Source: Macrostomum lignano (taxonomy: Eukaryota). Taken from it: DNA of 64,000 nt. Position numbers and translations under genes: made by a program. The notes beneath the pieces were generated by a model. It saw nothing but the letters and a program-made list of their open reading frames with translations, ran no database searches and was not told the DNA's origin. Below are positions 7,101 to 37,240 of the stretch, in pieces. The stretch is taken from positions 186,001 through 250,000 of the forward strand of contig NIVC01001522.1 in assembly GCA_002269645.1 (NCBI GenBank). Reading direction: 5' to 3'. Within the stretch, counting starts at the first letter, position 1. The number at the start of each line of letters is the position of its first letter.

Positions 7101-10100
7101 CTTTGATATGTTATGTTTTACGAGTCTCTACAAGTTCTACGAGTGACAAGTGAATATCAATACGGACGTCGTCTATTGTATTTTCTGTATGTTTCTTTTT
7201 CTCAATGTTACTTGCGTGTCTTTTCCACTTTGTGTACTTTTACTAATACGACGTATGAAAGCAGAGCTTCTGTCTTTCTCTTCTTATTTTTGTCCCCCAT
7301 CTCTCTCTTTCTCCTTCTTTCTCTCTATATATACATATCACTATTTCTCTTACTCTTTTATTGTTTGCATTCTGATAGCTTCTGACATATTTTCTATCTC
7401 CAACTCACTGATCTCTGTTTGCACTTGCATGTGTAGGCGTACTCATTGCATCAATCTGCCGCACCTGCACATTTTTCTCTCCTGGATCTTTTTTGTTACT
7501 TCAATCAGACGTTTCAATCTGCCGACTGTCAGCGAGGTGGCAGTGCTGGTTCCTGATGGAGATGAAGACACCGACGGAATTTCAACGACGAAGCGAGACG
7601 TTCTCCTGCATCTGAGAGGCGGTGGCCTTCAGCGCATTGACGAGACCAACCGGTGCTACGACGCTCTAGAGTATGTCTTGTTTCATCCTCGAGGTGAGGA
7701 CGGATGGCATCTGGGCATGACGATGACGAATGGTCGGAAGCTGACTCCCAAGGCCATGTATCAATACCTATTGATGGTGCGACCAGGGGTGTTCAATCCA
7801 CTTCACTATGGTCGACGACTGCTGCAGCAGTACATTGTGGATCAAGCGGCCAAGATAGAGACGGAGCGACTCAACTACCAGAGAACTCATCAGGCGGATC
7901 TGCGCTCGGAGACTTACAGTGGCTTAAGAGATGCTCTGGTTGCTGTGGACGGCGATGGCAGTCAGGTTGGACAGCGAGTCATTTTGTCGTCGACATTTGT
8001 TGGAGGACCTCGCTACCTTCTTGAACGCCAGCAGGACGCTTTGGCGTATGTACAGCATTTTGGCCGCCCAGATCTGTTTATCACAATGACTGCCAATCCC
8101 AACTGGGACGAGATTGTACAGGAGTTGCTACCAGGTCAAAATGCTTCTGATCGGCCAGACCTGACAATGAGAGTATTCGATTTGAAGCGGAAAGCTCTGC
8201 TTCAGAGAATCAGGACCGTCTTTGGCCTGCAGGTGGCACATGTTTGCAGTCTGGAATATCAGAAGAGAGGTAAGTACTCGTAATTTTTCCCGGTATTCAG
8301 GTGGTACTATTGAAGCATATTATTTCTCGAGCTGCAACATGCTCACGACACATAAAAACCATGTTTCTTCAATTCAGGGCTTCCACACGTTCATCTGCTT
8401 CTCTGGCTGGCAACTCGGGACAGAGTGACACCTGATCGATACGACGAGATCGTCTCCGCAGAGATCCCTAGCGCCGAGACGAACCCGGAACTACACAAGC
8501 TGGTGATCACCCACATGCTACACGGACCCTGTGGCAAGACGAACCCGTCCTGCCCGTGCATGGATAAGGGCAAGTGCACTAAAGGATTTCCAAAGGATTT
8601 CCAGATCGCCACAGTGGTAAACGATTCGGGCTACCCATACTACCGTCGACGAGCGCCTTCAATGGGTGGCCACGTGGGAAAGAAATTGTTTCGAGGGAAG
8701 GAGATGACACTGAACAATGGGTAAGTGTATTGCTCAGCCATTGTTTTTCGCTATTTTACTGAACAGCATCTCATTTTAGAACCCTATGTACTAACAGCAT
8801 CTCGTTTTGGGACTTATTTTTTATCCTTATTTTCGTGCAAAGTAATCGACTTGTAACCATGTATAGGCTTCTTAAATATAATATCCTCAGCGTCAGAAAG
8901 AAGTAATACTTCAGGACATAAATGCCTCGCAGATGTTTTTTTTACTTAAATTGATATTTGTTTTTTCCTAGGATTTGTAAGCACCAAACTTATTTTAATT
9001 ACTTTGGTGCTTCCTCCCCCAAACAAATTCTTGTCCTCCCTTAGATTCGTGGTCCCATACTCGCCGAAGCTGCTTGCGGAGTTCCGGTGTCATCTCAACG
9101 TGGAGGTCTGCGCCACGGTGAAAGCGATTAAGTACGTAGTTAAGTACTTAAACAAAGGATCCGACATGGCGGTTTGCCAGCTGAGCCGAGAGCTTCGGAA
9201 CCGAGACGAGATCAGCGCCTACCTGCTAGCTCGCTACCTGGGACCACACGAAGGCGCGCAGATAATCTTTGGCCTGGACGTTCACAGCCGGTCACCACCG
9301 GTTGTGCCTCTGAGTGTGCATCTGCCAGGCAAGGTCAAGGTCTACTTCACGGAGCAGACGGCAGCGCAGAGAGCAGTGCAGCCACCCCGCAGCACCTTGA
9401 CGGCCTTCTTTGAACTGTGCCGGACCGACAGCTTCGCTCGGCAACTGCTATACGGAGAGCTCCCTCGCTACTTTGTATGGCATGTGGACAAAAAGGAATG
9501 GCAGCGGGCCAAGCGAGGTGCACAAGTGGAAGGCCATCCGGACGTTCGACAGCGTGACGCCATCGGCAGAATCTACACCGTCAGTCCGCGTGCTGGTGAC
9601 GTCTTTTATCTTCGCCTGGCCCTCCTGCGCGTTCGAGGCCCAGTCGGCTACGAGGCCCTGCGCACAGTCAACGGAGTTTTGCAGCCAAGCTTCAAGGAAG
9701 CCTGCAGAGTCCTGGGCTTTCTGGAGGACGACAAACACTGGCAGTTGTGCATGGAGGAGGCGGCCGAAACTCGGATGCCGACTGCACTTCGCTGTCTGTT
9801 CTGCGTCATCCTCTTCTTCGGTGACGCCAGTGATATTCCCAGCCTGTGGGATCGATTTCGTGCTGCCATGGGCGAGGACTTCGTTCATCAAGGATTGGAC
9901 GAGGAGACGGCAAGCAACCGAGTCCTGCAAGAGCTGGCGGTGCGGCTAGAAGCCATGGGCGGTGGCCGACTGCCTGACTTCGGCCTGCCGGAACCGAGAC
10001 AGCAGACAGCAGAGGATGCGCCCGAATATGACAGTCAGCAGTTGCACAACTTTGTCGAAGAACGCGAGCTGCTGCTGACTGAGGAACAGAGGACAGTCTA

Positions 10101-11803
10101 CAATGTTGTTCGAGAGAGTCTGCAAGGTGGGCGTGGTGGACTTCATTTCATTGATGCAGCTGGTGGCACCGGAAAAAGTTTTCTGCTCGAACTTCTCCTG
10201 GCGTGGGTGAGATCACGTGGTGAAGTAGCCATGGCTGTTGCCAGCACCGGAATTGCGGCCACTCTTCTACCTGGAGGGCAGACTGCGCACTCAGCATTCA
10301 AGATTCCCGTGTCACCAGTGCGCCGGGACAACGCCTTCTGTTCGATCGGCAAGCAGAGCAACCTTGCGGAGAGATTGAGAAGAACCCGACTGATTGTGTG
10401 GGATGAGGCTGCCATGATGCACCGGAAGGACCTGGAGACCGTTGAGCGTAGCCTCAGAGACACAGTGGTAGATCAGCCTTTCGGCGGTCTCGTAGTTGTG
10501 TTGGCTGGGGACTTTCGCCAGCTTCTCGCCGTCATCAAATGTGGAACTGCGGCCAATATGGTGGACGCATGCATTAATCACAGTGCATTATGGTCAGGGT
10601 TCGTGAAGCACCGGCTGACTCGAAACCTTCGGCTTCAGGCAGAGAGCGACTCTGGGGCTGCAAATTACGCGGAATTCCTGCTGCAAGTGAGTACAGTGCT
10701 ATCCCTTGCTTTAAAAGTAGCATTTTTTGGGTAATTTTTTCGCTGGCTCGTATGAGCCTAAAAGTACTGTTTCTTTATGAGCCTAAAAGTACTGTTCCTT
10801 TATGAGCCTAAAAGTACTGTTCCTTTATGAGCCTAAAATTATGAGCCTAAAAGTACTGTTCCTTTATGAGCCTAAAAGTTTATTTTATGAGCCTAGAAAT
10901 ACTGTTTCTTCGTGTCTAAGTTTGCATTGGTATTCTTTATATTGTGTTCATCCTTTCATCCTGTATTTATACACGTGTAGTAACTTTTTCCTTTATTATT
11001 ATTGCATATTCCATTATCCATAATCACAATTACTCGAAAAGGTTGGCGAAGGACGACTCCCGGAGGACGACCAAGGCAACGTTGAGCTCCCAGCACAGAT
11101 CTGCATGCCGGCAGGGGCGCAGACAAGAGACCTGATTCAGCACGTCTTCCCTACATTCGAGGAATCCGACGAGCGCAACAGGCTGTTCGAGTCAAGAGCC
11201 ATCCTCGCCCCGCACAACCGAACCGTCGATGAAATCAACGCTGCCTGCCTGGAGCTCTTCCCTGGCGAAGGGGTCGAGTACCGGTCGTTCGACTCCATCC
11301 CGAATGATGAAGATGCGGCTACCCAGTTTCCCGTGGAGTCTCTCAACAGCCTGGATCCTCCTGGACTGCCGCAACATCTGCTTCGACTCAAGGTGGGTAT
11401 GCCGGTGATGCTGCTGCGGAATCTGCACCCGCCTCGCCTGTGCAACGGCAGCCGACTGATCGTGACCAAACTGGAGCCCAATGTACTGGTCGCGAGGATT
11501 GCAACTGGAGCGTACAAAGGTGAACAGGTGTTTTTGCCACGCATTCCATTGGAGCCAAGTACGGCTGACTTACCGATTGTATTTCGACGGCTCCAGTTTC
11601 CTGTTCGTCCTTGTTTTGCTATCACGGTCCACAAGAGCCAAGGCCAGACTCTGGACTTTTTTGGTGTACATTTGATTCTCTCTTGCTTTCAGCATGGACA
11701 ATTGTATGTTGCCTTGAGCAGAGCCCGTGATCCCAAAAACATTCGCGTATTGGCTCCTGACAACAAGACTCGGAATGTCGTTCTGAAGCCTGTTCTCTCA
11801 TAG
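4187..11803 (+). CDS. Helitron Rep/helicase (RepHel) with N-terminal OTU protease and Zn-binding motif; 7 exons, ~1662 aa, uninterrupted
   Basis: Exons 4187-4494, 5450-6052, 6191-6760, 7509-8269, 8378-8720, 9045-10686 and 11042-11803 all have GT-AG junctions, keep phase and sum to 4989 nt. Motifs: OTU GDGNCFFHSV..EHYNSL; CSHC..ICC; RRFNLPT; Rep motifs PDLFITMTANP, EYQKRGLPHVHLL, VVPYSP..KYVVKYLNKG; PIF1 motifs GGTGKS, IVWDEA, GDFRQL, FAITVHKSQGQTL, HGQLYVALSR. Confidence 0.95.
4890..5240. repeat. Compound (GA)n/GAGC microsatellite in RepHel intron 1
   Basis: Continuous GA-rich simple repeat; explains the low-complexity ORFs at 4866-5261. Confidence 0.95.
10751..10905 (+). repeat. 25-bp minisatellite in RepHel intron 6
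   Basis: TATGAGCCTAAAAGTACTGTTCCTT at 10751, 10776, 10801 and 10826, plus truncated copies (~7 core copies). Confidence 0.9.
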
Positions 11804-12218
11804 GAATTTCTTGTCGTGCTATACATTAGTTTACATTGATGCGACAAAGACATTATCGATTTTGCATTTCCTGGCATACTAACGGCTTGTATTTGTTAGG
11901 AACGCTGTTAAAAAATTGTTTGCCTCCTTACTGCAATACTGCACTGTTATCCATACACTTATCTGTTCATCGTTTGCAATTTTATTAACTTCTGCAAAGT
12001 TTCGTTCACCATCTGAATGAATGCCTTGATCACCGCATAATGAAAGCCATGCAGGAAAAACATTGCATTATACAGCGTAGCTTATTTTTGCACTAGCGAA
12101 ATTGATACATACACATGTAAAAATTTGCTTCATGTAAAAAATGTAATCACCAAATTTCTAACAAAGCTAAATATATACGCTTTTCTGGTATTTGTCGTAA
12201 AATAGTATATATATAATA

Positions 12219-12550
12219 CTAGCGGTACCCCCACCCTTCGGGTGTTCCCATCCATCTAAATTCCATCAGGCCAAATTCACACACATTGCAACTCCTTGCC
12301 ATGGACGTTGAAATCAGCAAAAAAAATTTCATTTTGCTGATGTCAATTAAATCAAGACCTACGTTGTTCAACTTTCTAGAAAGATTTATTATCTCTATCG
12401 TTATTGTACCCAATTTTCCTATTGGTTACAATGCAGGGGATTCATCCATCCCCTCTCCTACTCATCCATCCCCTCTCCCATCCATCCATCCATCCTCCTC
12501 CCACTCTCACCCATCCCATCTCCCTCTCTATCTCACATTTATCCCACTGT
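12219..12550 (-). mobile_element. Inverted copy of a Helitron 3' terminus
   Basis: Reverse complement of ~25755-26070; the predicted translations of both copies are identical through HPSHLPLY. Has hairpin CACCCTTCGGGTG (12232-12244) and CTAG at 12219-12222 preceded by A. Confidence 0.85.
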
Positions 12551-14064: not shown

Positions 14065-14210
14065 TCATAAAAATGTGTGTGTGTGTGTGTTTGTGCATTA
14101 GGCATTTCTTGGGACAAGCGTGTATAAACTGACCCGTGCTATTAGGACCAAAAATGTGTTGGGCCAGGCCCAATAAGTGCGTCCCGACACTTCCAAAAAT
14201 GAATTCTATT
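14065..14210 (+). repeat. (TG)n-associated dispersed repeat, homologous to 22795-22920
   Basis: Both copies read (TG)n TTTG..GGCATTT.TTGGG..GACCCG..AAAAA.TGTTGGG..GTCC.ACACTTCCAAAAA. Confidence 0.7.
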
Positions 14211-16541
14211 GAAATGAAAAAATATTCATTGGAACCGTCTTTCGATTCTCCTTTCAAAAATCAATGTCATTTTTTCATATTTTTAATCAAACACGGGGAA
14301 TCTAATGATTTGCAGTGTCCTAAGAAGTTTAAAAAATTATGCGAACTGATGGTCTGATCCAACAGAACAATTGGGTCTCAAATCGGAATTCTCGTTTTAT
14401 TACAATATTTCTTACAATATCAAGAAAGTCTACTACAAGTAACAGATAGAGGTTCTCCACAGGGCTGCCAATCGACACTTGAAAGGATCCTGACATTTGG
14501 CATCGTGTTTACTATAAAATATGAAATAATTTAATAAAGATTTAGAATATTACAATCAAGCATACAAACCTTATAGATTTAGTATATTTAGATTTTTGCA
14601 TAGAAACAGCTAGCATCTAAATTCATTAGCTTCCAATTTCACTTATACACGAAACATGGCAAATTAAGGTTACATCCGCCTGTGCCCTCGGCCATTTTAA
14701 CTGAAATTCTCGTTTTCAGTCAGCTGCATTAATCTATTTGTCATATGTGAATGGGTATTAACTGACTCAAGTTAGTGACTGGAGGCCATTAACGTAAAGT
14801 GACACTTTGAGTGAGGTAGTTTTCCGGTGGAAATTCTCACAGTCTTATGAAGCGCTTTTAGAGCAAAGAAATAAAGGGCAAAGAAAAACTTTGCATTTCC
14901 CGAGAAAACCAAGGACGAGTATTAAAGGGAAACGTTTAATCTCTAAGGCTTTAAATGACTTCCTTATTGGCCTGGGTTTGGGCAGCCATACTATGTAGCA
15001 AAATTTTTCCTAGAATTATGATAATTATCGTCTGGTGTACTGAAAAGTACGGAGATACCAAGAAACTTAAGATGACTGCATGGACTGCTAGCACATGTTT
15101 GAGTGTCACTGTCACTGTAAAGTCTAAATCGATGACTAGTTGGCCCAAAACTAACTACTAGGCCTTCCTGAAAAACAATTCTGCTTATCTTGGATCGTAA
15201 AGATAAACCCACGTACAGAGCAGAAGTGTTAAGACAAGCGTGTACAAGACCCAGGCAATCCCTTACCCAGGCCACGTGTACATTCCTATCGCGGCGGGGG
15301 GAAGCGGGGAGGAGAGGCGGGCGCAAGGGAGTCAGGATAAAGTTTACACTGAAGTTGAGGCCTACAAGAGGAAGAGCCAATTCTAATGGAAAGGTACATG
15401 TAGAAGTTCCCTTTGACAAACGGCGTACTGCATATGTTCAAACGAATATAATTCATTTACGAGACCTGCACTACACAGACAAAATGTGCCACGTCACAAG
15501 AGTTTCCATGCATGACCTGGCATGAAAAGACTTGGCTAGGAACCATTACACATATGTAAGTAGAATTTAAAATTCTTTTTAAAATTTTATGATTAAATAA
15601 AAACTTAACCGGAATTTACATATGTACTTTTCTAAAATTCCAGATACGTTGATATCGATAAGCTACCGTTTTCTTCTATAACAAACAGATTGGCCTTCAT
15701 TGTCAAGTAAGTCTTGTCTCGTACTCGTATATGTCGTATTTTTTGTAGGTTGAAAAAAATAATAAGCAGCCTAGTAATACTCTGAGCTCAGTGAAATATA
15801 AGAGAGGCGGGACGATCACCTTATTTATCAATTAATTTACAACAGCCAGTTGAGCAATCATAAGTAGGCAAAATTTACACTTCTAGGAAGAACAAATTTT
15901 ACTAAAAGTTTCAATCAAAACATTTGGGAAAGAAATCTCGCACGACACATCGCCCACAGTACTAGAGACTTGGAGAAATACTATGTGAGTTTTCTGGGCA
16001 ACTAATGTAATATATTACTGTTATAATTCGATAGTCGAATTATTTTTTTACCCAAAGCAGTGCTATTGCATAACTAAAGAACAGTATAAAAATGACAGCA
16101 TTCTAGAACGAGAAACAAAGCTTACTGCAAAGGCAAACGCCGAAAGAAAAGCAGGGCAGAGTCAGCAGCAAAAAAGAAGCTCATCTGAATGGAAAGATGG
16201 GCGGTCAGCAAAGAGATAGGATCTCAAAAAATTGCAACTCCTAGTAACTGAAACTCAATTGCAATAAGTGTTTTGTTCTCTAGGGCATTATTAAAACAAG
16301 CAAGCCTGCCTGCAGTCAGCTAGTGAGAAAGTAAGTTGTTGCGGCACTATCGGGAAAGTGAAAATTGTACTCCATCTGACTCACACAAGCAGCAGCGTTG
16401 GGACAAACCTCGAGTATTTTAATTGTACAGTAAAATTTCATTGACAATGAAGCATTTATTAGAACAGCGACATTTAAATCTGTTTTCAAACAAATCAGAC
16501 CGATTTCTCATGAGTTATTTTTCTTTTGTGCGCCCACGCAC

Positions 16542-16605
16542 AGGTTCATCCGCATTCAAACTCGCCGCTGCATCCGTCATTTGGTTCACTTGCTGCTCAC
16601 AAGCC

Positions 16606-16641
<36 letters not shown>

Positions 16642-18527
16642 GCTATCCGTGCAGGCAGTCAGTCTATTTGTGAATTTTCTGGTGGATCTGAAGAAAACCC
16701 GTCTGGCACAGGATTAAAGAGAAAGAGACGATCTGTTTTGGGTGAGTATTATCTGCTGTAGAAGTATTGTACACCAGAGTACTTGTGTTACCTGATAGAG
16801 CACAATTCAAAAGCAATGCAACAATCTCAGTGGCATTGTTGGGACACAAGCTACAAACGCAAAGAATAGTAAACACAGCCCAGCCTAGCTCAAGGCTAGT
16901 AATTTGTTGGGCATTTATTGGGACATTGCAGCCAGGCCTATTTTTTGAACAGCATTTGTTGGGTCGCACTTATTGGGACAATACTGATTCTAATCGCGAC
17001 TACTTCTGAGTTCTGACTTTTCAAAACAGACCCAGCATTAGTTGAACACGTTCTATTAAAGGGTTCCTTTATAGCCTATTAATGATTACTAAAGCAAGCC
17101 TATCTTAATTGATTTCTTTTCCTCGCAGATTCTGAAGTCAGCCACGCCAGCGACATGCCTAAGAGACAAGAATGCGCTTTAACGATCAGCAGCGAGCATT
17201 CTGATCTCGCCGCTGCATCCGTCATTTGGTTCACTTGCTGCTCACAAGCCGCAGCAGCAGCAGCAGCAGCAGCAGCCGCCGCTATCCGTGCAGGCAGTCA
17301 GTCTATTTGTGAATTTTCTGGTGGATCTGAAGAAAACCCGTCTGGCACAGGATTAAAGAGAAAGAGACGATCTGTTTTGGGTGAGTATTATCTGCTGTAG
17401 AAGTATTGTACACCAGAGTACTTGTGTTACCTGATAGAGCACAATTCAAAAGCAATGCAACAATCTCAGTGGCATTGTTGGGACACAAGCTACAAACGCA
17501 AAGAATAGTAAACACAGCCCAGCCTAGCTCAAGGCTAGTAATTTGTTGGGCATTTATTGGGACATTGCAGCCAGGCCTATTTTTTGAACAGCATTTGTTG
17601 GGTCGCACTTATTGGGACAATACTGATTCTAATCGCGACTACTTCTGAGTTCTGACTTTTCAAAACAGACCCAGCATTAGTTGAACACGTTCTATTAAAG
17701 GGTTCCTTTATAGCCTATTAATGATTACTAAAGCAAGCCTATCTTAATTGATTTCTTTTCCTCGCAGATTCTAAAGTCAGCCACGCCAGCGACATGCCTA
17801 AGAGACAAGAATGCGCTTTAACGATCAGCAGCGAGCATTCTGATCTCGCCGCTGCATCCGTCATTTGGTTCACTTGCTGCTCACAAGCCGCAGCAGCAGC
17901 AGCAGCAGCAGCAGCCGCCGCTATCCGTGCAGGCAGTCAGTCTATTTGTGAATTTTCTGGTGGATCTGAAGAAAACCCGTCCGGCACAGGATTAAAGAGA
18001 AAGAGACGATCTGTTTTGGGTGAGTATTATCTGCTGTAGAAGTATTGTACACCAGAGTACTTGTGTTACCTGATAGAGCACAATTCAAAAGCAATGCAAC
18101 AATCTCAGTGGCATTGTTGGGACACAAGCTACAAACGCAAAGAATAGTAAACACAGCCCAGCCTAGCTCAAGGCTAGTAATTTGTTGGGCATTTATTGGG
18201 ACATTGCAGCCAGGCCTATTTTTTGAACAGCATTTGTTGGGTCGCACTTATTGGGACAATACTGATTCTAATCGCGACTACTTCTGAGTTCTGACTTTTC
18301 AAAACAGACCCAGCATTAGTTGAACACGTTCTATTAAAGGGTTCCTTTATAGCCTATTAATGATTACTAAAGCAAGCCTATCTTAATTGATTTCTTTTCC
18401 TCGCAGATTCTAAGTCAGCCACGCCAGCGACATGCCTAAGAGACAAGAATGCGCTTTAACGATCAGCAGCGAGCATTCTGATCTCGCCGCTGCATCCGTC
18501 ATTTGGTTCACTTGCTGCTCACAAGCC

Positions 18528-18569
<42 letters not shown>

Positions 18570-19178
18570 GCTATCCGTGCAGGCAGTCAGTCTATTTGTG
18601 AATTTTCTGGTGGATCTGAAGAAAACCCGTCTGGCACAGGATTAAAGAGAAAGAGACGATCTGTTTTGGGTGAGTATTATCTGCTGTAGAAGTATTGTAC
18701 ACCAGAGTACTTGTGTTACCTGATAGAGCACAATTCAAAAGCAATGCAACAATCTCAGTGGCATTGTTGGGACACAAGCTACAAACGCAAAGAATAGTAA
18801 ACACAGCCCAGCCTAGCTCAAGGCTAGTAATTTGTTGGGCATTTATTGGGACATTGCAGCCAGGCCTATTTTTTGAACAGCATTTGTTGGGTCGCACTTA
18901 TTGGGACAATACTGATTCTAATCGCGACTACTTCTGAGTTCTGACTTTTCAAAACAGACCCAGCATTAGTTGAACACGTTCTATTAAAGGGTTCCTTTAT
19001 AGCCTATTAATGATTACTAAAGCAAGCCTATCTTAATTGATTTCTTTTCCTCGCAGCTTCTGAAGTCAGCAACGCCAGCGACATGCCTAAGAGACAAGAA
19101 TGCGCTTTAACGATCAGCAGCGAGCATTCTGATCTCGCCGCTGCATCCGTCATTTGGTTCACTTGCTGCTCACAAGCC

Positions 19179-19214
<36 letters not shown>

Positions 19215-19823
19215 GCTATCCGTGCAGGCAGTCAGTCTATTTGTGAATTTTCTGGTGGATCTGAAGAAAACCCGTCTGGCACAGGATTAAAGAGAAAGAG
19301 ACGATCTGTTTTGGGTGAGTATTATCTGCTGTAGAAGTATTGTACACCAGAGTACTTGTGTTACCTGATAGAGCACAATTCAAAAGCAATGCAACAATCT
19401 CAGTGGCATTGTTGGGACACAAGCTACAAACGCAAAGAATAGTAAACACAGCCCAGCCTAGCTCAAGGCTAGTAATTTGTTGGGCATTTATTGGGACATT
19501 GCAGCCAGGCCTATTTTTTGAACAGCATTTGTTGGGTCGCACTTATTGGGACAATACTGATTCTAATCGCGACTACTTCTGAGTTCTGACTTTTCAAAAC
19601 AGACCCAGCATTAGTTGAACACGTTCTATTAAAGGGTTCCTTTATAGCCTATTAATGATTACTAAAGCAAGCCTATCTTAATTGATTTCTTTTCCTCGCA
19701 GATTCTGAAGTCAGCCACGCCAGCGACATGCCTAAGAGACAAGAATGCGCTTTAACGATCAGCAGCGAGCATTCTGATCTCGCCGCTGCATCCGTCATTT
19801 GGTTCACTTGCTGCTCACAAGCC

Positions 19824-19878
<55 letters not shown>

Positions 19879-20473
19879 CCGTCAGTCTATTTGTGAATTT
19901 TCTGGTGGATCTGAAGAAAACCCGTCCGGCACAGGATTAAAGAGAAAGAGACGATCTGTTTTGGGTGAGTATTATCTGCTGTAGAAGTATTGTACACCAG
20001 AGTACTTGTGTTACCTGATAGAGCACAATTCAAAAGCAATGCAACAATCTCAGTGGCATTGTTGGGACACAAGCTACAAACGCAAAGAATAGTAAACACA
20101 GCCCAGCCTAGCTCAAGGCTAGTAATTTGTTGGGCATTTATTGGGACATTGCAGCCAGGCCTATTTTTTGAACAGCATTTGTTGGGTCGCACTTATTGGG
20201 ACAATACTGATTCTAATCGCGACTACTTCTGAGTTCTGACTTTTCAAAACAGACCCAGCATTAGTTGAACACGTTCTATTAAAGGGTTCCTTTATAGCCT
20301 ATTAATGATTACTAAAGCAAGCCTATCTTAATTGATTTCTTTTCCTCGCAGATTCTGAAGTCAGCCACGCCAGCGACATGCCTAAGAGACAAGAATGCGC
20401 TTTAACGATCAGCAGCGAGCATTCTGATCTCGCCGCTGCATCCGTCATTTGGTTCACTTGCTGCTCACAAGCC

Positions 20474-20515
<42 letters not shown>

Positions 20516-21124
20516 GCTATCCGTGCAGGCAGTCAGTCTATTTGTGAATTTTCTGGTGGATCTGAAGAAAACCCGTCCGGCACAGGATTAAAGAGAAAGA
20601 GACGATCTGTTTTGGGTGAGTATTATCTGCTGTAGAAGTATTGTACACCAGAGTACTTGTGTTACCTGGTAGAGCACAATTCAAAAGCAATGCAACAATC
20701 TCAGTGGCATTGTTGGGACACAAGCTACAAACGCAAAGAATAGTAAACACAGCCCAGCCTAGCTCAAGGCTAGTAATTTGTTGGGCATTTATTGGGACAT
20801 TGCAGCCAGGCCTATTTTTTGAACAGCATTTGTTGGGTCGCACTTATTGGGACAATACTGATTCTAATCGCGACTACTTCTGAGTTCTGACTTTTCAAAA
20901 CAGACCCAGCATTAGTTGAACACGTTCTATTAAAGGGTTCCTTTATAGCCTATTAATGATTACTAAAGCAAGCCTATCTTAATTGATTTCTTTTCCTCGC
21001 AGATTCTGAAGTCAGCAACGCCAGCGACATGCCTAAGAGACAAGAATGCGCTTTAACGATCAGCAGCGAGCATTCTGATCTCGCCGCTGCATCCGTCATT
21101 TGGTTCACTTGCTGCTCACAAGCC

Positions 21125-21178
<54 letters not shown>

Positions 21179-21829
21179 GCTATCCGTGCAGGCAGTCAGT
21201 CTATTTGTGAATTTTCTGGTGGATCTGAAGAAAACCCGTCCGGCACAGGATTAAAGAGAAAGAGACGATCTGTTTTGGGTGAGTATTATCTGCTGTAGAA
21301 GTATTGTACACCAGAGTACTTGTGTTACTTGGTAGAGCACAATTCAAAAGCAATGCAACAATCTCAGTGGCATTGTTGGGACACAAGCTACAAACGCAAA
21401 GAATAGTAAACACAGCCCAGCCTAGCTCAAGGCTAGTAATTTGTTGGGCATTTATTGGGACATTGCAGCCAGGCCTATTTTTTGAACAGCATTTGTTGGG
21501 TCGCACTTATTGGGACAATACTGATTCTAATCGCGACTACTTCTGAGTTCTGACTTTTCAAAACAGACCCAGCATTAGTTGAACACGTTCTATTAAAGGG
21601 TTCCTTTATAGCCTATTAATGATTACTAAAGCAAGCCTATCTTAATTGATTTCTTTTCCTCGCAGATTCTGAAGTCAGCAACGCCAGCGACATGCCTAAG
21701 AGACAAGAATGCGCTTTAACGATCAGCAGCGAGCATTCTGATCTCGCCGCTGCATCCGTCATTTGGTTCACTTGCTGCTGCCAAGCTGCAGCAGCAGCAG
21801 CAGCCGCTATCTGTGCAGCAGTCAGTTAA
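16542..21829 (+). repeat. Tandem array of ~640-663-bp units (8 periods, 9 exon-like blocks), each with splice sites and a variable (GCA)n tract
   Basis: Homologous positions at 16767, 17406, 18045, 18695, 19340, 19990, 20641 and 21304 (periods 639-663). Most of the length difference comes from the GCA tract. Full units have TTTTCCTCGCAG| and TTTTGG|GTGAGT; the first block uses a different acceptor and the last ends in a stop instead of a donor. Confidence 0.95.
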
Positions 21830-22026
21830 TTCATGAGTTTTCTGGCGGAGCTGGTTATTTTTTTAATTTTCTGAATCGAGAAGCCGATTAACTGTTGTGT
21901 GCTTCACTGGAATATTATTTAGAGGACGCATTTTTTGCAGTCTGTTTCTAATAAAATCCGGTGCAATGACCGCGGTAGAGCTCTAGCATTTGCTTTTTAT
22001 AGTATTTGTGTATATTCTTTTTCAAG

Positions 22027-22168
22027 CTATGCTGGAATTGTTGGGACAGCCCTATCCACACTGGCTATGGTGGAATTGTTGGGACAGCCCTATCCACACT
22101 GGCTATGGTGGAATTGTTGGGACAGCCCTATCCACACTGGCTATGGTGGAATTGTTGGGACAGCCCCA
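22027..22168 (+). repeat. 38-bp minisatellite, ~4 copies
   Basis: CTATGGTGGAATTGTTGGGACAGCCCTATCCACACTGG at 22027, 22065, 22103 and 22141. Confidence 0.95.
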
Positions 22169-22689
22169 TACTATAGTGTGTGCTGGCTTCTGCTATAGTG
22201 TGGTTCATTTCCGCATCCTTTTACGTAGCATTCTGTGGGTCCGAATAGCTGACATGTACCTTTTGAGTAATTCTAGTGATTGTGTCATAATCAATAAAGT
22301 ACATTTTTATGAACAGTGGAGTTTCGCTACAGAATTGTTTTTTCCCAGTGGCACTAAATGTAGCAAATTTTGTTTATTCAGATCGTAAAATTTTTTTGAT
22401 ATGTGTCAATGTCGTTTGTCTTCGATAACCTTAAAGTCCCTTGCCATTTACCATCCTGTCTTCTATAATCTATGATCGCTGAAATTATCTGGTGAAATTT
22501 GACGCGCTGATATTATTGCCTTAGTGGAATTCAGCAAGACACCAGGGTTTTTTAATTCTGTTTTAGACAAGTATACATGTACAATCTGTTGTGAGTTCAA
22601 TGCACCTCGAAAAATGCTTTCCAACTGTTTTCAGTAAGCCAAAAGCATGTTGTCAATAAAAATCTATTTGGTGGGTTGAAAATTGCCTG

Positions 22690-22920
22690 TGTGGGGACGT
22701 GTGTGTGTGTGTGATTTTTCGTGTGTCGGAGCAGTCCCAATATGTGCAAGTTTTTGCACACTTGGCCAATAAGTGCCTCGTGCACGTTTGTGTGTGTGTG
22801 TGTGTGTGTTTGCGCACGGGGCATTTGTTGGGCCATACGCGTACAACGGGACCCGCACTGTTGGGCCAAAAAAAATGTTGGGACTGTCCCATCAAGTCCG
22901 TCCAACACTTCCAAAAAAGT
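22690..22920. repeat. (TG)n-loop inverted-repeat element; related copies at 14065-14210 and 25005-25135
   Basis: GGCCAATAAGTGCCTCGTGCAC (22764-22785) pairs with GCGCACGGGGCATTTGTTGGGCC (22812-22834) across a TG tract. Confidence 0.7.
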
Positions 22921-25097
22921 TACAATAGCAGCTCAAAAAAATACTCTATGGATTCAGCTCGACAGCCTCTTTTTGATGGTGCAACTCATTTTTAATAATT
23001 TTACTTGCTGTGTCAATAAATAATCAAAAACTGGCGTCCCAATAAGGAAAAATGATACAAAATTCGACCAAATCACTATTGGGACACTGAAATGGCTAAT
23101 CTGCTCCCGCATATTTTTATTGGTTTTTTCTCATATTTTTACTAATAGTAGATTTCAAGCGCATTCATTTGCTGCAGTCTTTGTTTCAAGACGTAAATAC
23201 ATAGCATACATTAAAATACATACAAAGCAAAGCATAGCAAAACACTTTTAAGGGTATTTTATTGTCAAAGGATGGTTCTGGATGGAGATAAACCTAAAGA
23301 AATGACAAGGGCTTAAATTTACTTCTGACTGTGATGGGCATCAGTACTCTACACGAACTAAATTGTTAGGACAGTGTTGCAGTGTTGAATACAACAGCCC
23401 ACTCTTGTTAGGACTCATGCTATTGACTGCTGCGCGCATTCGATATTCTATAAATTGTTGGAACTGTGTGCTAGAGTGTCGTTTACAAAAGCCCACTCAT
23501 ATTAGGACTTACCCCGTACATGTTAGGACTAAGCCCTACCCCCCTGTGTACATGGCTCCAATTTACCAGAGTCCCCTTGCTAGTTAAGTGTACATTTATT
23601 TTGGTCTATTATTGACGCCACCCCGCAAACGTACAATAAAACTAAATTGGCATGTACTCGCTATGCTGAAATCAATGGTCAACTCTGCCTCTGCCATGGC
23701 ACCCGAGTCACCATGGTATGGAAAGAACAGCATGGAATGGCACAGCGATAAACATGTAAGTGGTATTAAAAAACTTTGTCGGAAACAAGAAGCATTTATA
23801 TTTAAATGCTATAAAAAAGACTGCTCCTGCTAAGCAGTACCTACCTTTACTTCAGGTATATCACCTTTGATCAACTGCCATGTGGCGCAATTGCCAAAGG
23901 ATCCGTCGACTTTAACCGGTAAGCTGTAAAAGCTTTGAGTAAAACTTGACATTTCGTCTGAATCCATTGACATTCAATAGCCTACGTGTCCAACCACAAA
24001 AATTATAAGTTTTGTACTTTTAACTCTCAGATTGGGTCTTAGCAGATTCTATAGCTATGCATGCAAGGGCCCCTCAGAGGAGATGCTTAAACACTGCAGT
24101 GCATTTTTCCTAGCAATTATTGGGACACGAAGTGTTGGGCCACTGTGTGTGTGTGTCTAGTTTTTTCCGCATTTGTTAAGTCACCTAAAGAACTCAATTA
24201 ATAAAGGGCTCCAGAACAAATTGATGGGCAAACGGATGACACACTGCACAGAGACTTGTTGGGACATATTAAAAACAGCTTATTTTAGAATGGGTACACT
24301 TTACTAAAGTAGAATGCTCCTACAGAAAGCTGCAAGCAAACTAGCATCTTCTGGAGCTGACATGCAGAGAAGAATGATTTTGTCGTCCTTGAAATCACTA
24401 AATCGATATGCGAAATCGATCTTTTGCTAATCCCACCACAGGTTCCAGTGAAAAGAAGAAACGAAACCCATTGACTAAATTGGCAGTCGACTCAATCGAT
24501 GCCGACTGCAACGGACCTGTCAGCTTCGAACTCAGGAGAGCAGCTAATAGACTACGAGCGTAATGCTGGATGCCAGAGTGCTCTAAATAACGAGACTCCT
24601 GTTTTCTCACTCGACCGGAATTTTTTGTTTAATCTGCTTAACTAATATCTGCGTTTCAGTTTTTCAGTTTCACTGTCAATTTTAGGTTTTTTCTAAGCGC
24701 AAGTGTAATTGAATTTTTTATTCATATTAGTCAGGCATATTGCGTACAGCATTATAGCGTATTAGTTAAGGTAAAGGTAAATAGACTGCTTGTAACTAGT
24801 TTTTCTTTCATGTGGATTGGCTTTAACGAAGCCTTTTGTATTTCAAGTAATGCTGAATTCGCTGGACTGAGGACAATATAGTTACACGATGATATGCTAT
24901 TCCTTCACTTTCAATAGATCATACTATTAGTATGGGACGTGCTTTTTTATTTCAATGTATGCTTTTTTTCATCATTTAAATGCTAAAAATACTTAATAGG
25001 TCATTGCACTGTGTGTATGTGTGTGTTTTCGTGTGTCAAAAAAATTGCAAAATAAGTGCCCACCATTGTATACCGTACCAACAAGTGCCCGGTGCGT

Positions 25098-25099
<2 letters not shown>

Positions 25100-25135
<36 letters not shown>

Positions 25136-25450: not shown

Positions 25451-25754
25451 AGAATGAGAATTGAAAAATACACAAATGAGAGAATTGGAAAAATATTTTA
25501 TTTCGTTCTTATTTCTTCACGCATTTTCAGCTGCGTGCTGAAATTCTAAGAGAGAAGACGCACAGAAGGACAACCGAGACAAGAAGTCGTGGAGAAAAGA
25601 GGGAGAGAAGATAATAGAGGCACTGAGAGTTGTTTTTTCCTGTTACACCTGCAATTACGGGCAACTGACGCGATGGCCAATGAAAATTGCATTGATAAGG
25701 GAGAGACGGGATGGCTGAGAGGGGGGATAAGAGGGAGAGGGATGAATGAAACGG

Positions 25755-26070
25755 TGGGATAAAGAGGGAGATGGGATGGGTGAGAGTGGGAGGAGGATGG
25801 ATGGATGGATGGGAGAGGGGATGGATGAGTAGGAGAGGGGATGGATGAATCCCCTGCATTGTAACCAATAGGAAAATTGGGTACAATAACGATAGAGATA
25901 ATAAATCTTTCTAGAAAGTTGAACAACGTAGGTCTTGATTTAATTGACATCAGCAAAATGAATTTTTTTTGCTGATTTCAACGTCCATGGCAAGGAGTTG
26001 CAATGTGTGTGAATTTGGCCTGATGGAATTTAGATGGATGGGAACACCCGAAGGGTGGGGGTACCGCTAG
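25755..26070 (+). mobile_element. Helitron 3' terminal region (hairpin + CTAG)
   Basis: CACCCGAAGGGTG hairpin, then GGGGTACCG, CTAG at 26067-26070, followed by T. Confidence 0.85.
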
Positions 26071-26647
26071 TATCATCTAATATACTAAAAATGAAATGCT
26101 TTCTTCTAATATACTAAAAATGGTCTGTTTGTGTGTGTGTGTGTGTGTGTGTGATCGATTTTAGCAAAAACGGCTCAACCGATTTTCTTCGAATTTGCAC
26201 CATTCGATTAGAATTTTTTCCGTGACGATACATGCATCGTGGCTAAGAAATTGCTCGATGCTAAAGGGATTAAATATTCGAAAAACATGCTTTTTTGCAA
26301 AGGTCAAGCAGCTCTTTCGACTTGAAATGCATTGTAAGAATGCTAGCAGAAAAACTGACTGGTTGAATTCTGATTCTGAAATAGATTGCATCACAATACA
26401 CTTTATTTATCGTCTGTGTACTGGCTGAATTTGACACACAATTGAATTGCGTCACAGCTTTGAGTGTGAAAGCATAGCGCAGTACTGAATTTATATTACG
26501 TAACCATATTGTTAACTTTCATAGACACTGGTACTGACTTGCCTAAGAAATTGATTATGTCATAACTGCTTCGTGTGACTTTTTACTCTACCTGACTTGG
26601 TGTGAGTGTTGAATTATATAAGTGGTACAAATTCACTGATAACTGCG

Positions 26648-26710: not shown

Positions 26711-26789
26711 AGTAGTTTAAAAGTAGTAGTGTAAATTTTTTTATTAAAAGCTTTTATTAAAGGACTAAATAAAAACACTTAGATTACTG

Positions 26790-27885
26790 CACTCAATAAG
26801 CCAAGGATTATTGCTATTAATAAAGCAAGGATTAATGCACTTGATTAATCAAGGATTATTGCTATTAATAAACCAAGGATTACTGCACTCAATAAGCCAA
26901 GGATTATTGCTATTAATAAACCAAGGATTACTGCACTTGATTAATCAAGGATTATTGCTATTAATAAACCAAGGATTATTGCAGTTGATAAGCCAAGGAT
27001 TACAGCGCTTGATAAGCCATGGATTATTGCAGTTGATAAGCCAAGGATTACAGCGCTTGATAAGCCATGGATTATTGCACTTGATAGTAAAGAATGTTGC
27101 ACTTGATAAGCCAAGGATTACTGCACTCGATAAGCCAAGGATTATTGCTATTAATAAACCAAGGATTACTGCACTCAATAAACCAAGGACTATTGCTCTT
27201 GGCAAACCAAGGATTACTGCACTCGATAAGCCATGGATTATTGCTATTAATAAACCAAGGATTATGCACTTGGCAAACCAAGGATTACTGCACTCGATAA
27301 GCCAAGGATTATTGCTATTAATAAACCAAGGATTACTGCACTCGATAAGCCAAGGATTATTATAAGCCAAGGATTATTGCTATTAATAAACCAAGGATTA
27401 TGCACTTGGCAAACCAAGGATTACTGCACTCGATAAGCCAAGGATTATTGCTATTAATAAACCAAGGATTACTGCACTCAATAAACCAAGGACTATTGCT
27501 CTTGGCAAACCAAGGATTACTGCACTCGATAAGCCATGGATTATTGCTATTAATAAACCAAGGATTACTGCACTCGATAAGCCAAGGATTATTGCTATTA
27601 ATAAACCAAGGATTACTGCACTCGATAAGCCAAGGATTATTGTAAACCAAGGATTACTGCACTCGATAAACCAAGGATTATTGCTCTTAATAAACTAAGG
27701 ATTACTGCACTCGATAAGCCAAGGATTATTGCTATTAATAAACCAAGGATTACTGCACTCGATAAGCCAAGGATTATTGATATTAATAAACCAAGGATTA
27801 CTGCACTCGATAAGCCAAGGATTATTGCTATTAATAAACCAAGGATTACTGCACTCGATAGCCAAGGATTACTGCGCTTGATAAG
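26790..27885 (+). repeat. 24-bp minisatellite with alternating variants (48-bp higher order), ~45 copies
   Basis: AGCCAAGGATTATTGCTATTAATA / AACCAAGGATTACTGCACTCGATA; 8-aa periodicity in the overlapping ORFs. Confidence 0.95.
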
Positions 27886-30249: not shown

Positions 30250-31795
30250 ATGGCGTCTACAATCACCAAGAAGATTAAGGCAAATATCTCTGGCCTGAAA
30301 CTGGGCTACATGAATGCGGCGGTTACTGGCCTTGTAACCGATTTGAAGGAGATCAGGTCCTACATGAAGAACGACGTCCGAAGCGAAGTTTTTTCATTCG
30401 TCTTGGTAGACGACTCGGCTGAGATGAGAGTCAGCGTTTTCGGCAAGGACCTGCGGTCTATTTGGGAAGTTTGCAATACTTCCGATGCTGTTCGGATAGC
30501 CGGCGGAATGGTAAAGACTTCGGATCCGAGATACAACAGCACGAATAATCCTATGGAGGTGTCTCTTTCTGTTGACTCCAAGGGATCAATATTTCGAAGC
30601 AATGAAGTTCCGACTGTTAGTGAACGGGCGTGTAACTATACGCGAATAAGCGACCTTCAAAACGTACGCCTGCAAGAGTGAGTTGCATTGTATCTATACT
30701 TGTATTTATTGTATAGACACAGTATACAATATTATTATATGTAAAATAGACATAATAGTATAGCATATTGGAAAATAGAGAATTGTATAGGCAATTGTGT
30801 AGCACTGTAGTGTATGTTCGGCTTTTATAAATTATTTTGACTAGATTAGCAATCTATTGTATGCCTTCATTCCTTGATGTTGGCTAGACTAGCAGTCCAT
30901 TATATTCATTCGTCTATTGATGTAGGTAGGAATAGGATTCAAATGAACTTCAAAAGGCGTTTTTGAGGTTTTAAAAGACTTTTAAAACTGTCCCCTCTGT
31001 ATTGCCTTTTATTAGAAATGTCGATGTCCTTGGAGCAATCGACGCACTGCAGCCGCCCGAGGAAGTCATGACGAAGGCTGGGAAGCGGATAAACGTAGCC
31101 AAAGTGACTCTTGTTGACCAGTCCTGTCGTTCTGTCTCCTGCACATTTTGGGGGTCGTCCTCCGATCAAGCTGTCAACTGGAGTGTCGGCGACATTTTGT
31201 CGATACGACGAGCAAAAGTACAAGAGTACGCTGGCGCTGTTGTACTTGGATGTACTGGCTCTGAAGTTCGGCTCAACTCGGACGACACCGAGGTTACGAA
31301 TTTGACTGACTGGTACACGAATGCTAAGCAGAGCGATACTGAGTTTCAACCTCTGGGTGCTCCGTGTCCATCAGGCGCGGTTGGCGGCTCTTCTGACCAA
31401 AGGGGAAGCAACAGGTGAGTTATTATGCAACTACCGGTATCGCACGAATCCTTCCGGGATGTAGACGAAATTGTCTTGGACTTTGGAGAAGGAATAAAGG
31501 TGCGCGTGTTCATTGTACATGTAACTTATTTAATGTTTAGTATCTTTCTGTAGTACAGATCTATTCACTCTAAGTTGCTACAGTATTGTATATTACTCGG
31601 TCAAGAATGTATAAAATTCAGTTTTAAGCAAACTTGTAAATTTTTGTTTATTAATTTTACCTTTCTACAGAAACTATACAGACTGGTGCCGTCTTGTGAG
31701 AGCCAACTCGAGTCAACACGAATCGACTGGAGTACGCAGGCTGATGAAACAAGCAGAATGTCATGCGAAGATTTCTCTGGCAGTTCAAGAAATCA
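30250..31795 (+). CDS. RPA70 (RPA1)-like ssDNA-binding protein with two OB folds (DBD-A/DBD-B-like), spliced; 3' end unresolved
   Basis: Exons 30250-30677, 31016-31414 and 31671-31795 join in frame with GT-AG. FSFVLVDDSAEMRVSVFG, CNYTRISDL, VDVLGAI, VTLVDQSCRSVSCTFWG, SIRRAKVQEY and LTDWY match the RPA70 DBD-A/B pattern. A further donor at 31796 implies another exon that I could not place. Confidence 0.85.
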
Positions 31796-35751: not shown

Positions 35752-37240
35752 TTCTGTTTTTGATCTTAGCTACTATATCGGGGTAGCTGTTCTCTCGGGT
35801 CCCTGTTAGGGACTACCTCCTCTATTGTTTCTTGTATTTTTTCCGTGAGTTTATCAACCACTTTGTCAAGTTCATCGGGAGTGGAGATACGGGATCGAGT
35901 CATACTGCAGTTTTCTAGTTTGTCTTGGAGAACGTATCTGAAGGCCTCCCAATCCGTGTGCCAGTAGCTTTTGGGTGGTTTTGGTTTAGCCTTGGAGTTG
36001 GGATCAATAAAAACTTTAACAATAATGGGTAGGTGGTCACTGTCGAGATCATCGCCAACAATGACATCACTGACAGAGTTAATCAGGTCAGGGGAGCAGA
36101 TGCCTAGATCAAGGACATTACCAATAATGTTGCCCCCTCTATTATTAATCCTGGTGCAGTCACCAAAGGAGTTTAGGATGAAGGGGGAATCCGGATGGTT
36201 ATCAAACCATTCATACAGTTGTTTCCCTGGGAAGTTTTCTACACTGCCACCGCCCAGCATAGAGTGGCGACAGTTGAGATCTCCTTTAAGTAAGGATCTA
36301 GGTTGTGAGAGCAGCTGCTCAGGCAGTGCAGTGCTGATTTGGTCAGGATTGGGAGCTCTGTAAATAAGGGAAATTGTTCCTGGGGTTATTGTTCGGAGTG
36401 ACATTGAGGCTAATAAACTCATGGTTAGAGTTGTCATAAAATTTTTTAACGTTCGAAACATTTAAGGTATTTTTATAAGCAATTGCCAGACCTCTCCTGA
36501 AGTCAGGAGTGTCGTATCTGATAACAGCGTAGCCTTGTACATAGCCTTGTAGTTTCGGAGAAAAGACCAATGTATATATTGTCATTGTGCAACCACATAA
36601 TAATCTCGTGCATTTTGTTGCTAAGTTTATTGCAGTTTAGGTGACCAAATTTCAGTGCGCTATTGGAATTTTTACTATTGAAAGCCATAATTAATTATCA
36701 GATTTCTCAGTGCTTAGGATCCGCCTCCGCTCACCAAAGTGGCTTTGGCTTCACCCGCCCTGGCAGCAGGCACCCTTCCGGGATTCAAGAAGGTCGCCAG
36801 GACCTCTGTCACTACCCGAATAGCAAGCTGGCTTGCTTCCCAGGCAGTGAGCAGACGCCCCGGTTCGATCTCCATGATCCGGTTGAGTGCCTCAAGTACC
36901 ACCCCGAGCACATCATTCCGCGTGAAGCCCCTCTCACCGGTTACAACGTTGGGGGCAGCATTGTCCGTTATTGGTTCAGCTTGGGCTGGCTCAGCGCTGC
37001 TGGTCGGTGGTGCAGACTGCTTGCTCATTACCGGCACGGCGTTGTCAGCAGGAAGCGCGGTCTGATTGGTCACCATGTTCGGTTGGGCAGCAGCAGTGGC
37101 AGCGGCACGATTGGAGTAGACAATGGGGCCGAGAGTAGGCCTTGGTCTTGGTCTTGTCATGTCGACGTAGGACAGTGGCCCCGGCACACCAAAGGTCTCG
37201 GCCAAGAACTGACTATCTATCCTATCACTAGTACCTAATT
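35752..37240 (-). mobile_element. Doubly truncated Jockey-like LINE: ORF1 3' part and decayed ORF2 APE endonuclease
   Basis: ORF 36714-37205 directly precedes MAFNSKNSNSALKFGHLNC (36688). APE motifs FSET, GDLNCRH and SDHLPI are broken by deletions. Highly similar to 63160-64000; homology stops at ~35752. Confidence 0.9.

Follow-up and report, generated by a model that had tools for sequence, protein, structure and literature searches.

A tandem exon–intron array carried inside a dispersed, inverted-repeat-ended mobile module of Macrostomum lignano

The DNA analyzed here, referred to as the window, was a stretch of 64,000 nucleotides of Macrostomum lignano (assembly GCA_002269645.1, contig NIVC01001522.1, positions 186,001–250,000, forward strand). 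Within 16.5–21.9 kb it contained eight in-register copies of an exon-like repeat, which were spaced 639–663 bp apart and showed 99–100% identity outside their (GCA)n tract. The array lies in a mobile module, designated A, which ends in inverted repeats and carries exons and introns in tandem (Table 1); that the array is an internal part of a dispersed mobile element had been overlooked in the first-pass annotation of the window. Exact matching located eight TTTTCCTCGCAG acceptors (last intron bases 17128, 17767, 18406, 19056, 19701, 20351, 21002, and 21665) and eight TTTTGG^GTGAGT donors (last exon bases 16741, 17380, 18019, 18669, 19314, 19964, 20615, and 21278; here and below, the caret marks a junction), with seven full exons, the lengths of which are given in Table 1. 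Translated together with the G of the preceding exon, the exons read D/A-SEVSH/NASDMPKRQECALTISSEHSDLAAASVIWFTCCSQ-(A)12-20-IRAGSQSICEFSGGSEENPSGTGLKRKRRSVL, the KRKRR motif included. One frame was open, and the remaining two held stops. Exact matching and translation therefore confirmed the array of exon-like units with an acceptor, a donor, phase 1, poly-Ala, and KRKRR that had been described earlier. The diverged last block with its in-frame TAA was likewise found, and two units reported as shifted had the lesions described for them, in the exons beginning at 18407 and 19702. The first block, for which a different in-phase acceptor had been claimed, indeed has one and is in phase 1, but the coordinate given for it was off by 2 nt, the exon starting at 16544 and not at 16542. 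One Ala-frame tryptic peptide predicted from the unit exon is AGSQSICEFSGGSEENPSGTGLK.

Thirteen M. lignano loci (L001–L013) were fetched for comparison. The module was built alike in ten independent loci, with the left arm followed by 7 to at least 18 array units, the terminal block, and the right arm, and the length of the element, which was set by that of the array, was about 6–14 kb. The length of the Ala tract ranged from 7 to 20 across loci, in agreement with the variation by GCA slippage that had been expected from the window. The stop of the terminal block was the same in L002, whereas in L001 the frame ran 15 codons further. The motif GGCAYTTNTTGGGMC, which is the motif of the terminal repeats, occurred in three copies in each intron and was also present in the 38-bp minisatellite of the module; it was found 29 times against 0.73 expected and, within the window, was confined to 14101–25089, while TTGGGAC was found 40 times against 5.75 expected. 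Searches for Rfam families and tRNAs at 12–27 kb of the window gave none, and a literature search on the gene identifiers and on Macrostomum satellites or transposons found nothing describing module A.

Table 1. Positions of module A, of its parts, and of the adjoining element X in the window.
Feature	Position	Strand	Remarks
Module A	14090–22808	+	Mobile module, ~8.7 kb: left arm, exon–intron array, terminal block, minisatellite, right arm, (TG)n tail
5' terminal inverted repeat	14093–14130	+	Aligns to the reverse complement of 22749–22785
Left arm	14131–16543	+	No coding evident; no conserved start codon before the first block
First block	16544–16741	+	Partial unit with its own acceptor (AG 16542–16543); phase 1; no ATG
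Unit exon 1	17129–17380	+	252 nt; intact; holds the first AUG of the spliced RNA (MPKRQ...)
Unit exon 2	17768–18019	+	252 nt; intact
Unit exon 3	18407–18669	+	263 nt; frameshifted by a 1-nt deletion (one A lost)
Unit exon 4	19057–19314	+	258 nt; intact; A..N variant
Unit exon 5	19702–19964	+	263 nt; frameshifted; 1 nt and 9 nt lost downstream of the Ala tract
Unit exon 6	20352–20615	+	264 nt; intact
Unit exon 7	21003–21278	+	276 nt; intact; Ala20
Introns 1–4 of eight	16742–17128, 17381–17767, 18020–18406, 18670–19056	+	387 nt each
Introns 5–8 of eight	19315–19701, 19965–20351, 20616–21002, 21279–21665	+	387 nt each
Terminal block	21666–21829	+	Diverged; TAA at 21827–21829
Poly(A) signal	21950–21955	+	AATAAA; kept in three aligned loci (window, L001, L002)
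Minisatellite	22026–22166	+	38 bp; 3.7 copies; with the TTGGGAC motif
3' terminal inverted repeat	22749–22785	-	Followed by GTTTG(TG)n
Element X	22809–25132	+	2.3 kb; relative of module A, directly after it

Homology between the window and the other copies spanned 14.07–22.81 kb and stopped there, with the exception of L002, the right flank of which also matched the window from 26.1 kb onward. The ends of the module (5' TTTGTGCATTAGG..., 3' ...CGTGCACGTTTG(TG)n) were sharp and common to the 10 independent loci, and the end junctions were base-for-base identical (...TTTGT^GCATTAGGCATTTCTTGGGACAAGCG on the left and CTTGGCCAATAAGTGCCTCGTGCACG^TTTG(TG)n on the right), while the flanks of the copies were of six different kinds on the left and six on the right. 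The terminal inverted repeats were imperfect (37 bp, 29/37 aligned positions matching), and none of 5000 shuffles gave as good a match. The element was usually situated in or beside (TG)n tracts, and four of the six left flanks consisted of (TG)n, which suggests insertion into such tracts or via microhomology with them. The arm segments of the copies were 93–100% identical. The arms of L004 and of the window were 100% identical despite different flanks, and the family is therefore very young. Left-arm ORFs (open reading frames) had no Pfam match.

The copy in L001 (8012 bp) was located 7.5 kb upstream of a small gene, homeologous copies of which were present in L012 and L013; both of these loci were collinear with the two flanks of L001 and precisely lacked the element. 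The empty site read ...gtgtgcatgag^tgcatgcctg and the filled site of L001 read ...gtgtgcatgag[TTTGTGCATTAGG...CGTGCACGTTTGTGTG]tgcatgcctg, written in the target-site test also as catgag[TTTGTGCA...CACGTTTGTGTG]tgcatgcc. At this one clean empty site there was no target-site duplication, no base being duplicated at the junction. As for the surroundings of other copies, that of L004 lay inside a myosin gene model on the same strand, that of L002 inside a TIR-domain gene model on the opposite strand, and that of L008 at a distance of 4 kb from a cathepsin-like gene. It should be noted that the window itself was considered as the myosin locus and rejected, since it holds no myosin motor motifs and L004 is a different locus. 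The proposal that window positions 26104–26124 represent the empty site corresponding to the L002 copy depends on a match of just 21 nt with the left flank and was kept as no more than a hint. Element X, which follows module A directly, had only ~120 nt at each terminus in common with it; its internal sequence was unrelated and contained no array, and it had inverted repeats of its own (0/5000 shuffles as good) and (TG)16 at its end. A relationship of this kind, confined to the termini, is what members of one transposon family would be expected to show.

The proposal of the first-pass annotation that the blocks act as exons was checked against transcript models and held, since RNA-seq-derived GenBank models use the predicted junctions. 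A search with two spliced units as the query matched only M. lignano proteins, and these carried the predicted junction KRKRRSVL^DSEVSH or ...SVL^ASEVSN. The GenBank (BOX15_) models were built from StringTie/TACO assemblies of RNA-seq data and a de novo transcriptome, with ORFs called by TransDecoder, and transcripts overlapping annotated repeats were dropped from the set (PMC5730564). The RNA-seq-derived CDS (coding sequence) models in GenBank took out exactly the predicted 387-nt introns: P0007 equalled positions 10001–11197 of L002 minus two predicted introns and was identical at every residue, L003 minus its predicted introns gave P0002, and L001 treated in the same way agreed with P0003 over the first 120 residues. 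Because removal of the predicted introns reproduced the protein models, cis-splicing between adjacent units is supported; transcription of the array on the + strand, with adjacent units spliced head to tail, is likewise supported, at second hand, from the annotation. All transcript models were partial and about two units long, as short reads permit. The transcript cluster Mlig029855 had GenBank gene-model numbers reaching g39, across many contigs. Many UniProt models switched frames and look like prediction artefacts. Two of the UniProt models, P0027 and P0028, started exactly at the first block (16544), in the poly-Gln frame. The spliced leader of M. lignano terminates in ATG (PMC8629364), and with the leader spliced onto the first block this ATG would set the poly-Gln frame, in which P0027 and P0028 start, and not the Ala frame.

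The first AUG of the spliced RNA is that of MPKRQ, in the Ala frame, because there is no conserved upstream start and the first block has no ATG. An ATG at 16511 was rejected as a start codon, since it was specific to the window and the other loci read AATAAG at that position; an upstream coding exon using the donor at 15984 was rejected as well, since exons closed by this donor have stops in all frames. From the first AUG, the ORF of the fully spliced window comprised 176 codons (two modules) and ended at a stop in the frameshifted third exon.

Coding constraint on the frame of the array was not detectable. The census of exons and introns covered ten loci with 112 full exons and 122 introns. 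GTGAGT...AG was kept in 122/122 introns, while 76 exons were intact, 27 were frameshifted, and 9 had a stop only, so that 36 of the 112 were broken. In L003, a TGG-to-TAG change (W to stop) was found in 11 of the 16 units, and this nonsense mutation has therefore been homogenised through that array. Among the fetched arrays, no complete one was fully intact; the only intact array was that of L011, which is ended by the contig end. Outside the Ala tract, variable columns numbered 20 of 222 in exons and 23 of 387 in introns, and nucleotide diversity was 0.009–0.016 in exons versus 0.004 in introns. Exon variation comprised 14 non-synonymous and 2 stop changes (170 sites) versus 7 synonymous changes (49 sites), which gave a pN/pS (ratio of non-synonymous to synonymous polymorphism per site) of ~0.66, not distinguishable from 1; a few of the variants may be alignment artefacts near indels. 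The frequency of 1-nt indels was similar in the two, with 0.99 per kb of exon and 1.46 per kb of intron. The broken exons, the spread of the stop in L003, and the value of pN/pS argue against the earlier suggestion that poly-Ala repeat proteins of varying length are the maintained product of the array. The chance that ~72 non-Ala codons are free of stops in one frame and that the length is divisible by 3 was estimated at roughly 2–3%, a figure which is suggestive, not overwhelming; the open frame counts as a single observation, since all units are copies of one sequence.

Comparison with Pfam revealed no family above the threshold; sub-threshold matches fell on the hydrophobic stretch only, with Bd3614_N having no passing stretch. 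Homologues outside M. lignano were not found when 1.84 billion representative proteins were scanned in full with HMMER, and among 5.8 billion sequences only M. lignano proteins were matched; one bacterial match was rejected as spurious. In the search for a donor host gene or a remote homologue, two word-based searches and the HMMER scan gave only the family itself and P0053 (UniProt A0A1I8FV09). The latter contains a diverged M. lignano exon with 52% identity and no poly-Ala (...SEHSDIADALATSCLLAAQEQQRTLLMQTGCSQSIDDLSCGAKDNSSGKGLKRKRRSVL), which in the model is spliced to a normal unit exon. This diverged exon was absent from the fetched loci and may be an older or ancestral form. The first-pass annotation had named three outcomes that would speak against it: equal divergence of exons and introns, the lack of a single-copy ancestral gene containing the exon, and the lack of spliced transcripts. 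Exon diversity proved at least as high as that of introns and no single-copy ancestral gene was found, while spliced transcripts do exist.

According to these results, M. lignano probably harbours a young, non-autonomous mobile element with the array as its internal tandem repeat and with an array frame not kept by selection. The number of units would shift through slippage in replication or unequal exchange, and each array would be mildly homogenised (intron identity of 99.4–99.9% within arrays versus 99.55% between arrays), and slippage of (GCA)n would alter the length of the Ala tract. The repeating open frame and the symmetric phase follow from the length of the unit exon being divisible by 3. 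The frame itself may go back to a captured exon, as its relic, or be an ORF of very recent or de novo origin; it would now be drifting rather than encoding a selected protein, and broken exons would spread as freely as intact ones. With the frame not kept by selection, the transcripts would be a by-product of the good splice sites and the poly(A) signal of the element. The best reading is that the array evolves neutrally or is very young.

Several points weigh against this explanation. About two thirds of the exons were intact, as was every examined splice site, and the low chance of an open frame estimated above makes it plausible that the frame arose as coding sequence or has some weak function now. 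The selection tests were low-powered, the family being young (units at least 99.5% identical), and some of the frameshifts are perhaps errors of the PacBio-based assembly. The transcript support consists of annotation models and is second-hand. No autonomous relative with the same ends and a transposase was found within the window or the fetched loci; with no transposase partner found and no target-site duplication at the single empty site, the element was not placed in any class.

In the foremost alternative, which is unlikely although it retains some weight, the mobile module bears a multi-exon gene, or a family of them, that is functional and encodes a modular protein or polyprotein. Each module could then consist of a hydrophobic Cys/Ala-rich segment followed by RKRR, serving either for cleavage by a furin-type protease or for nuclear localisation, and the number of modules would vary through exon gain, loss, or skipping. 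The use of the predicted junctions by transcript-derived models, the symmetric phase-1 exons, the position of the first AUG of the spliced RNA in the Ala frame, the intactness of 68% of the exons, and the conservation of both the stop-bearing terminal exon and AATAAA are all consistent with such a gene; several models were named "Secreted protein" by UniProt automatically, and the diverged paralogous exon of P0053 retains SEHSD...CSQSI...KRKRRSVL. However, broken exons make up 32% of the total, homogenisation has carried a stop through one array, exons are conserved no better than introns by either diversity or pN/pS, no complete fetched array is intact throughout, and the ORF of the window ends after two modules. 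In addition, the product has neither a Pfam domain nor a homologue beyond M. lignano, and its hydrophobic stretch is borderline for a membrane or signal segment (Kyte–Doolittle 19-residue maximum of 1.52).

Less probable still is a more far-reaching interpretation, in which module A represents a new kind of mobile element that ends in inverted repeats, inserts preferentially at (TG)n without duplicating the target site, and carries a self-expanding, translated array of symmetric, in-frame exons. The product might then be a repeat protein of recent origin that is secreted or processed; another possibility is that the array serves as a donor of in-frame exons after landing in the same orientation in a phase-1 intron of a host gene, of which the copy in the myosin gene of L004 may be an example.

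The first-pass annotation had attributed the amplification of the exon to rolling-circle replication. In that case module A would be a non-autonomous Helentron-type element with central tandem repeats, and the array would have arisen by Helitron/Helentron replication, which is considered improbable. A Helitron-type element does lie 2.3 kb upstream of the module, at 5514–11803 (+), with an OTU-like ORF (DGNCFFH), Helitron_like_N, a PIF1 helicase, and a Pif1 2B domain; its coding region is divided among at least five ORFs, and the element is thus degenerate or intron-containing. A (GA)171 tract occupies 4898–5239, just upstream of it. The insertion without target-site duplication at the single empty site also fits rolling-circle transposition, and the layout of module A, with subterminal inverted repeats, a central array, and a microsatellite, recalls that of Drosophila DINE-1. 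The same layout recalls the Helentron-derived elements described in oysters (PMC7492417). Nevertheless, the Helitron-type element adjoins no other copy of the module and does not carry the terminal motif of module A, and a direct comparison of its termini with those of module A revealed none in common. The ends of the module are not 5'-TC...CTRR-3' but TTTGTGCA...GCACGTTTG(TG)n, the empty-site junction is GAG^TGC or GAGT^GCA, with no A^T or T^T, and the 3' hairpin is not conserved (fold z-score of -0.9 for A and no hairpin in X). Finally, the repeat units have no element termini and are therefore not products of tandem transposition.

It is also conceivable, at a slightly lower probability than the rolling-circle origin, that each unit is a small gene of its own, which would receive the spliced leader in trans at the unit acceptor, start at MPKRQ, and yield a product of ~90 residues ending six codons into the unspliced "intron" (GEYYLL and a stop). 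ATTAAA, located ~70 nt before the next acceptor, would then act as the poly(A) signal in an operon-like arrangement. In M. lignano, ~30% of genes are trans-spliced and operons are present (PMC8629364), the read-through stop does lie six codons past the donor (ORF 16423–16761), one GenBank model, P0046, is unspliced and reads ...RSVLGEY, and several UniProt models start at MPKRQ. Against this, most transcript-derived models are cis-spliced across units, the terminal ATG of the leader would open the poly-Gln frame with a stop after 17 codons, and the unit acceptor differs from YTNCAG, the motif reported for trans-splicing. That the array results from misassembly or from the collapse of a repeat is hardly credible: although the reference assembly is PacBio-based and redundant (PMC5730564) and some 1-nt indels are perhaps sequencing errors, the same structure recurred on at least 10 contigs that differed in unit number, flanks, and locus-specific variants, and the transcript models agree with the assembled structure.

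Further repeats were observed around module A and element X. An inverted repeat of ~330 bp with 99% identity (12210–12536 and 25754–26079, arms 13.2 kb apart) flanks the two; the homology of its arms fades ~20 nt further out, and the right arm ends with AATATACTAAAAATGGTCTGT followed by (TG)n. The same 21-mer as at this right-arm end sits immediately to the left of the module copy in L002. The ~330-bp repeat may represent a single element with long inverted repeats, or else another element present twice in inverted orientation. A 24-bp minisatellite of 47 copies (26782–27884, consensus GATTATTGCACTTGATAAACCAAG) was also present in L002 downstream of the module, with 81–87% identity, and an interstitial telomere-like (TTAGGG)n tract was found at 5900–5945 of L002, ~250 bp to the left of the module copy. 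Two ORFs at 30250–31418 (+) had a weak, sub-threshold OB-fold match, possibly like replication protein A, and may belong to another Helitron-like element. Retroelement remains were located at 35766–36461 (-), 54214–55200 (-), and 61264–63724 (-); they include an integrase (zinc-binding and core domains) and ORFs resembling, by eye, reverse transcriptase and endonuclease, two of these ORFs being near-identical copies.

Transposons with internal tandem arrays are exemplified in Drosophila by DINE-1/DINE-TR1 and by the foldback element Tetris. In Crassostrea gigas, Helentron-derived elements with satellite-like arrays occur (PMC7492417). Like these elements, module A has arms with inverted terminal motifs around a central array, the copy number of the array differs by insertion, a microsatellite is associated, and the copies are dispersed, often in genes; like Helentrons, it shows no target-site duplication at its one empty site. 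In contrast to the array-bearing transposons, its unit of ~640 bp is a cassette of exon plus intron with consensus splice sites, which is transcribed and spliced into an open frame, and it departs from the definitions of Helitrons and Helentrons in its termini, its insertion site, and the missing 3' hairpin. Capture of gene fragments by transposons is known for Pack-MULEs, CACTA elements, and Helitrons in plants. Module A resembles them in being non-autonomous, in carrying exon-like cargo with introns that is transcribed and spliced, and in having weak or no coding constraint, whereas it differs in that no donor host gene was found and the unit has been amplified 7 to at least 18 times.

In modular proteins, symmetric phase 1-1 exons are duplicated in tandem, and polyprotein precursors are cut at dibasic sites; the genes concerned are single loci under purifying selection. 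The phase 1-1 exons of the array can similarly be added, lost, or skipped in frame, and each module ends in RKRR, but the array resides on a mobile element, a third of its exons are broken, and no constraint is measurable. With classical satellite DNA it shares head-to-tail repeats that are homogenised within arrays, at the intron identities given above; unlike satellites, which occupy few heterochromatic sites in long non-coding stretches, its arrays are only 5–12 kb long, comprise 7 to at least 18 units, are dispersed within a mobile element in gene-rich contexts, and are transcribed and spliced. Thus, a transposon with an internal tandem array is known, whereas a spliced, in-frame exon–intron cassette as its repeat unit is unusual.

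The preferred explanation, that of a young non-autonomous element with a drifting frame, accounts for a cluster of partial "hypothetical protein" and "Secreted protein" models of M. lignano (Mlig029855 and others), which would be cargo of the element. M. lignano is a model for regeneration and transgenesis, and in its genome a recently active, large non-autonomous element inserts in or near genes, importing strong splice sites and a poly(A) signal. A good-looking ORF with perfect splice sites, a symmetric phase, and a cleavage-like motif can come from copying alone, and for this reason exon-like arrays need tests of constraint and of genomic context before a gene is called. If the frame were nevertheless translated, module A would represent a repeat protein born and expanding inside a transposon.

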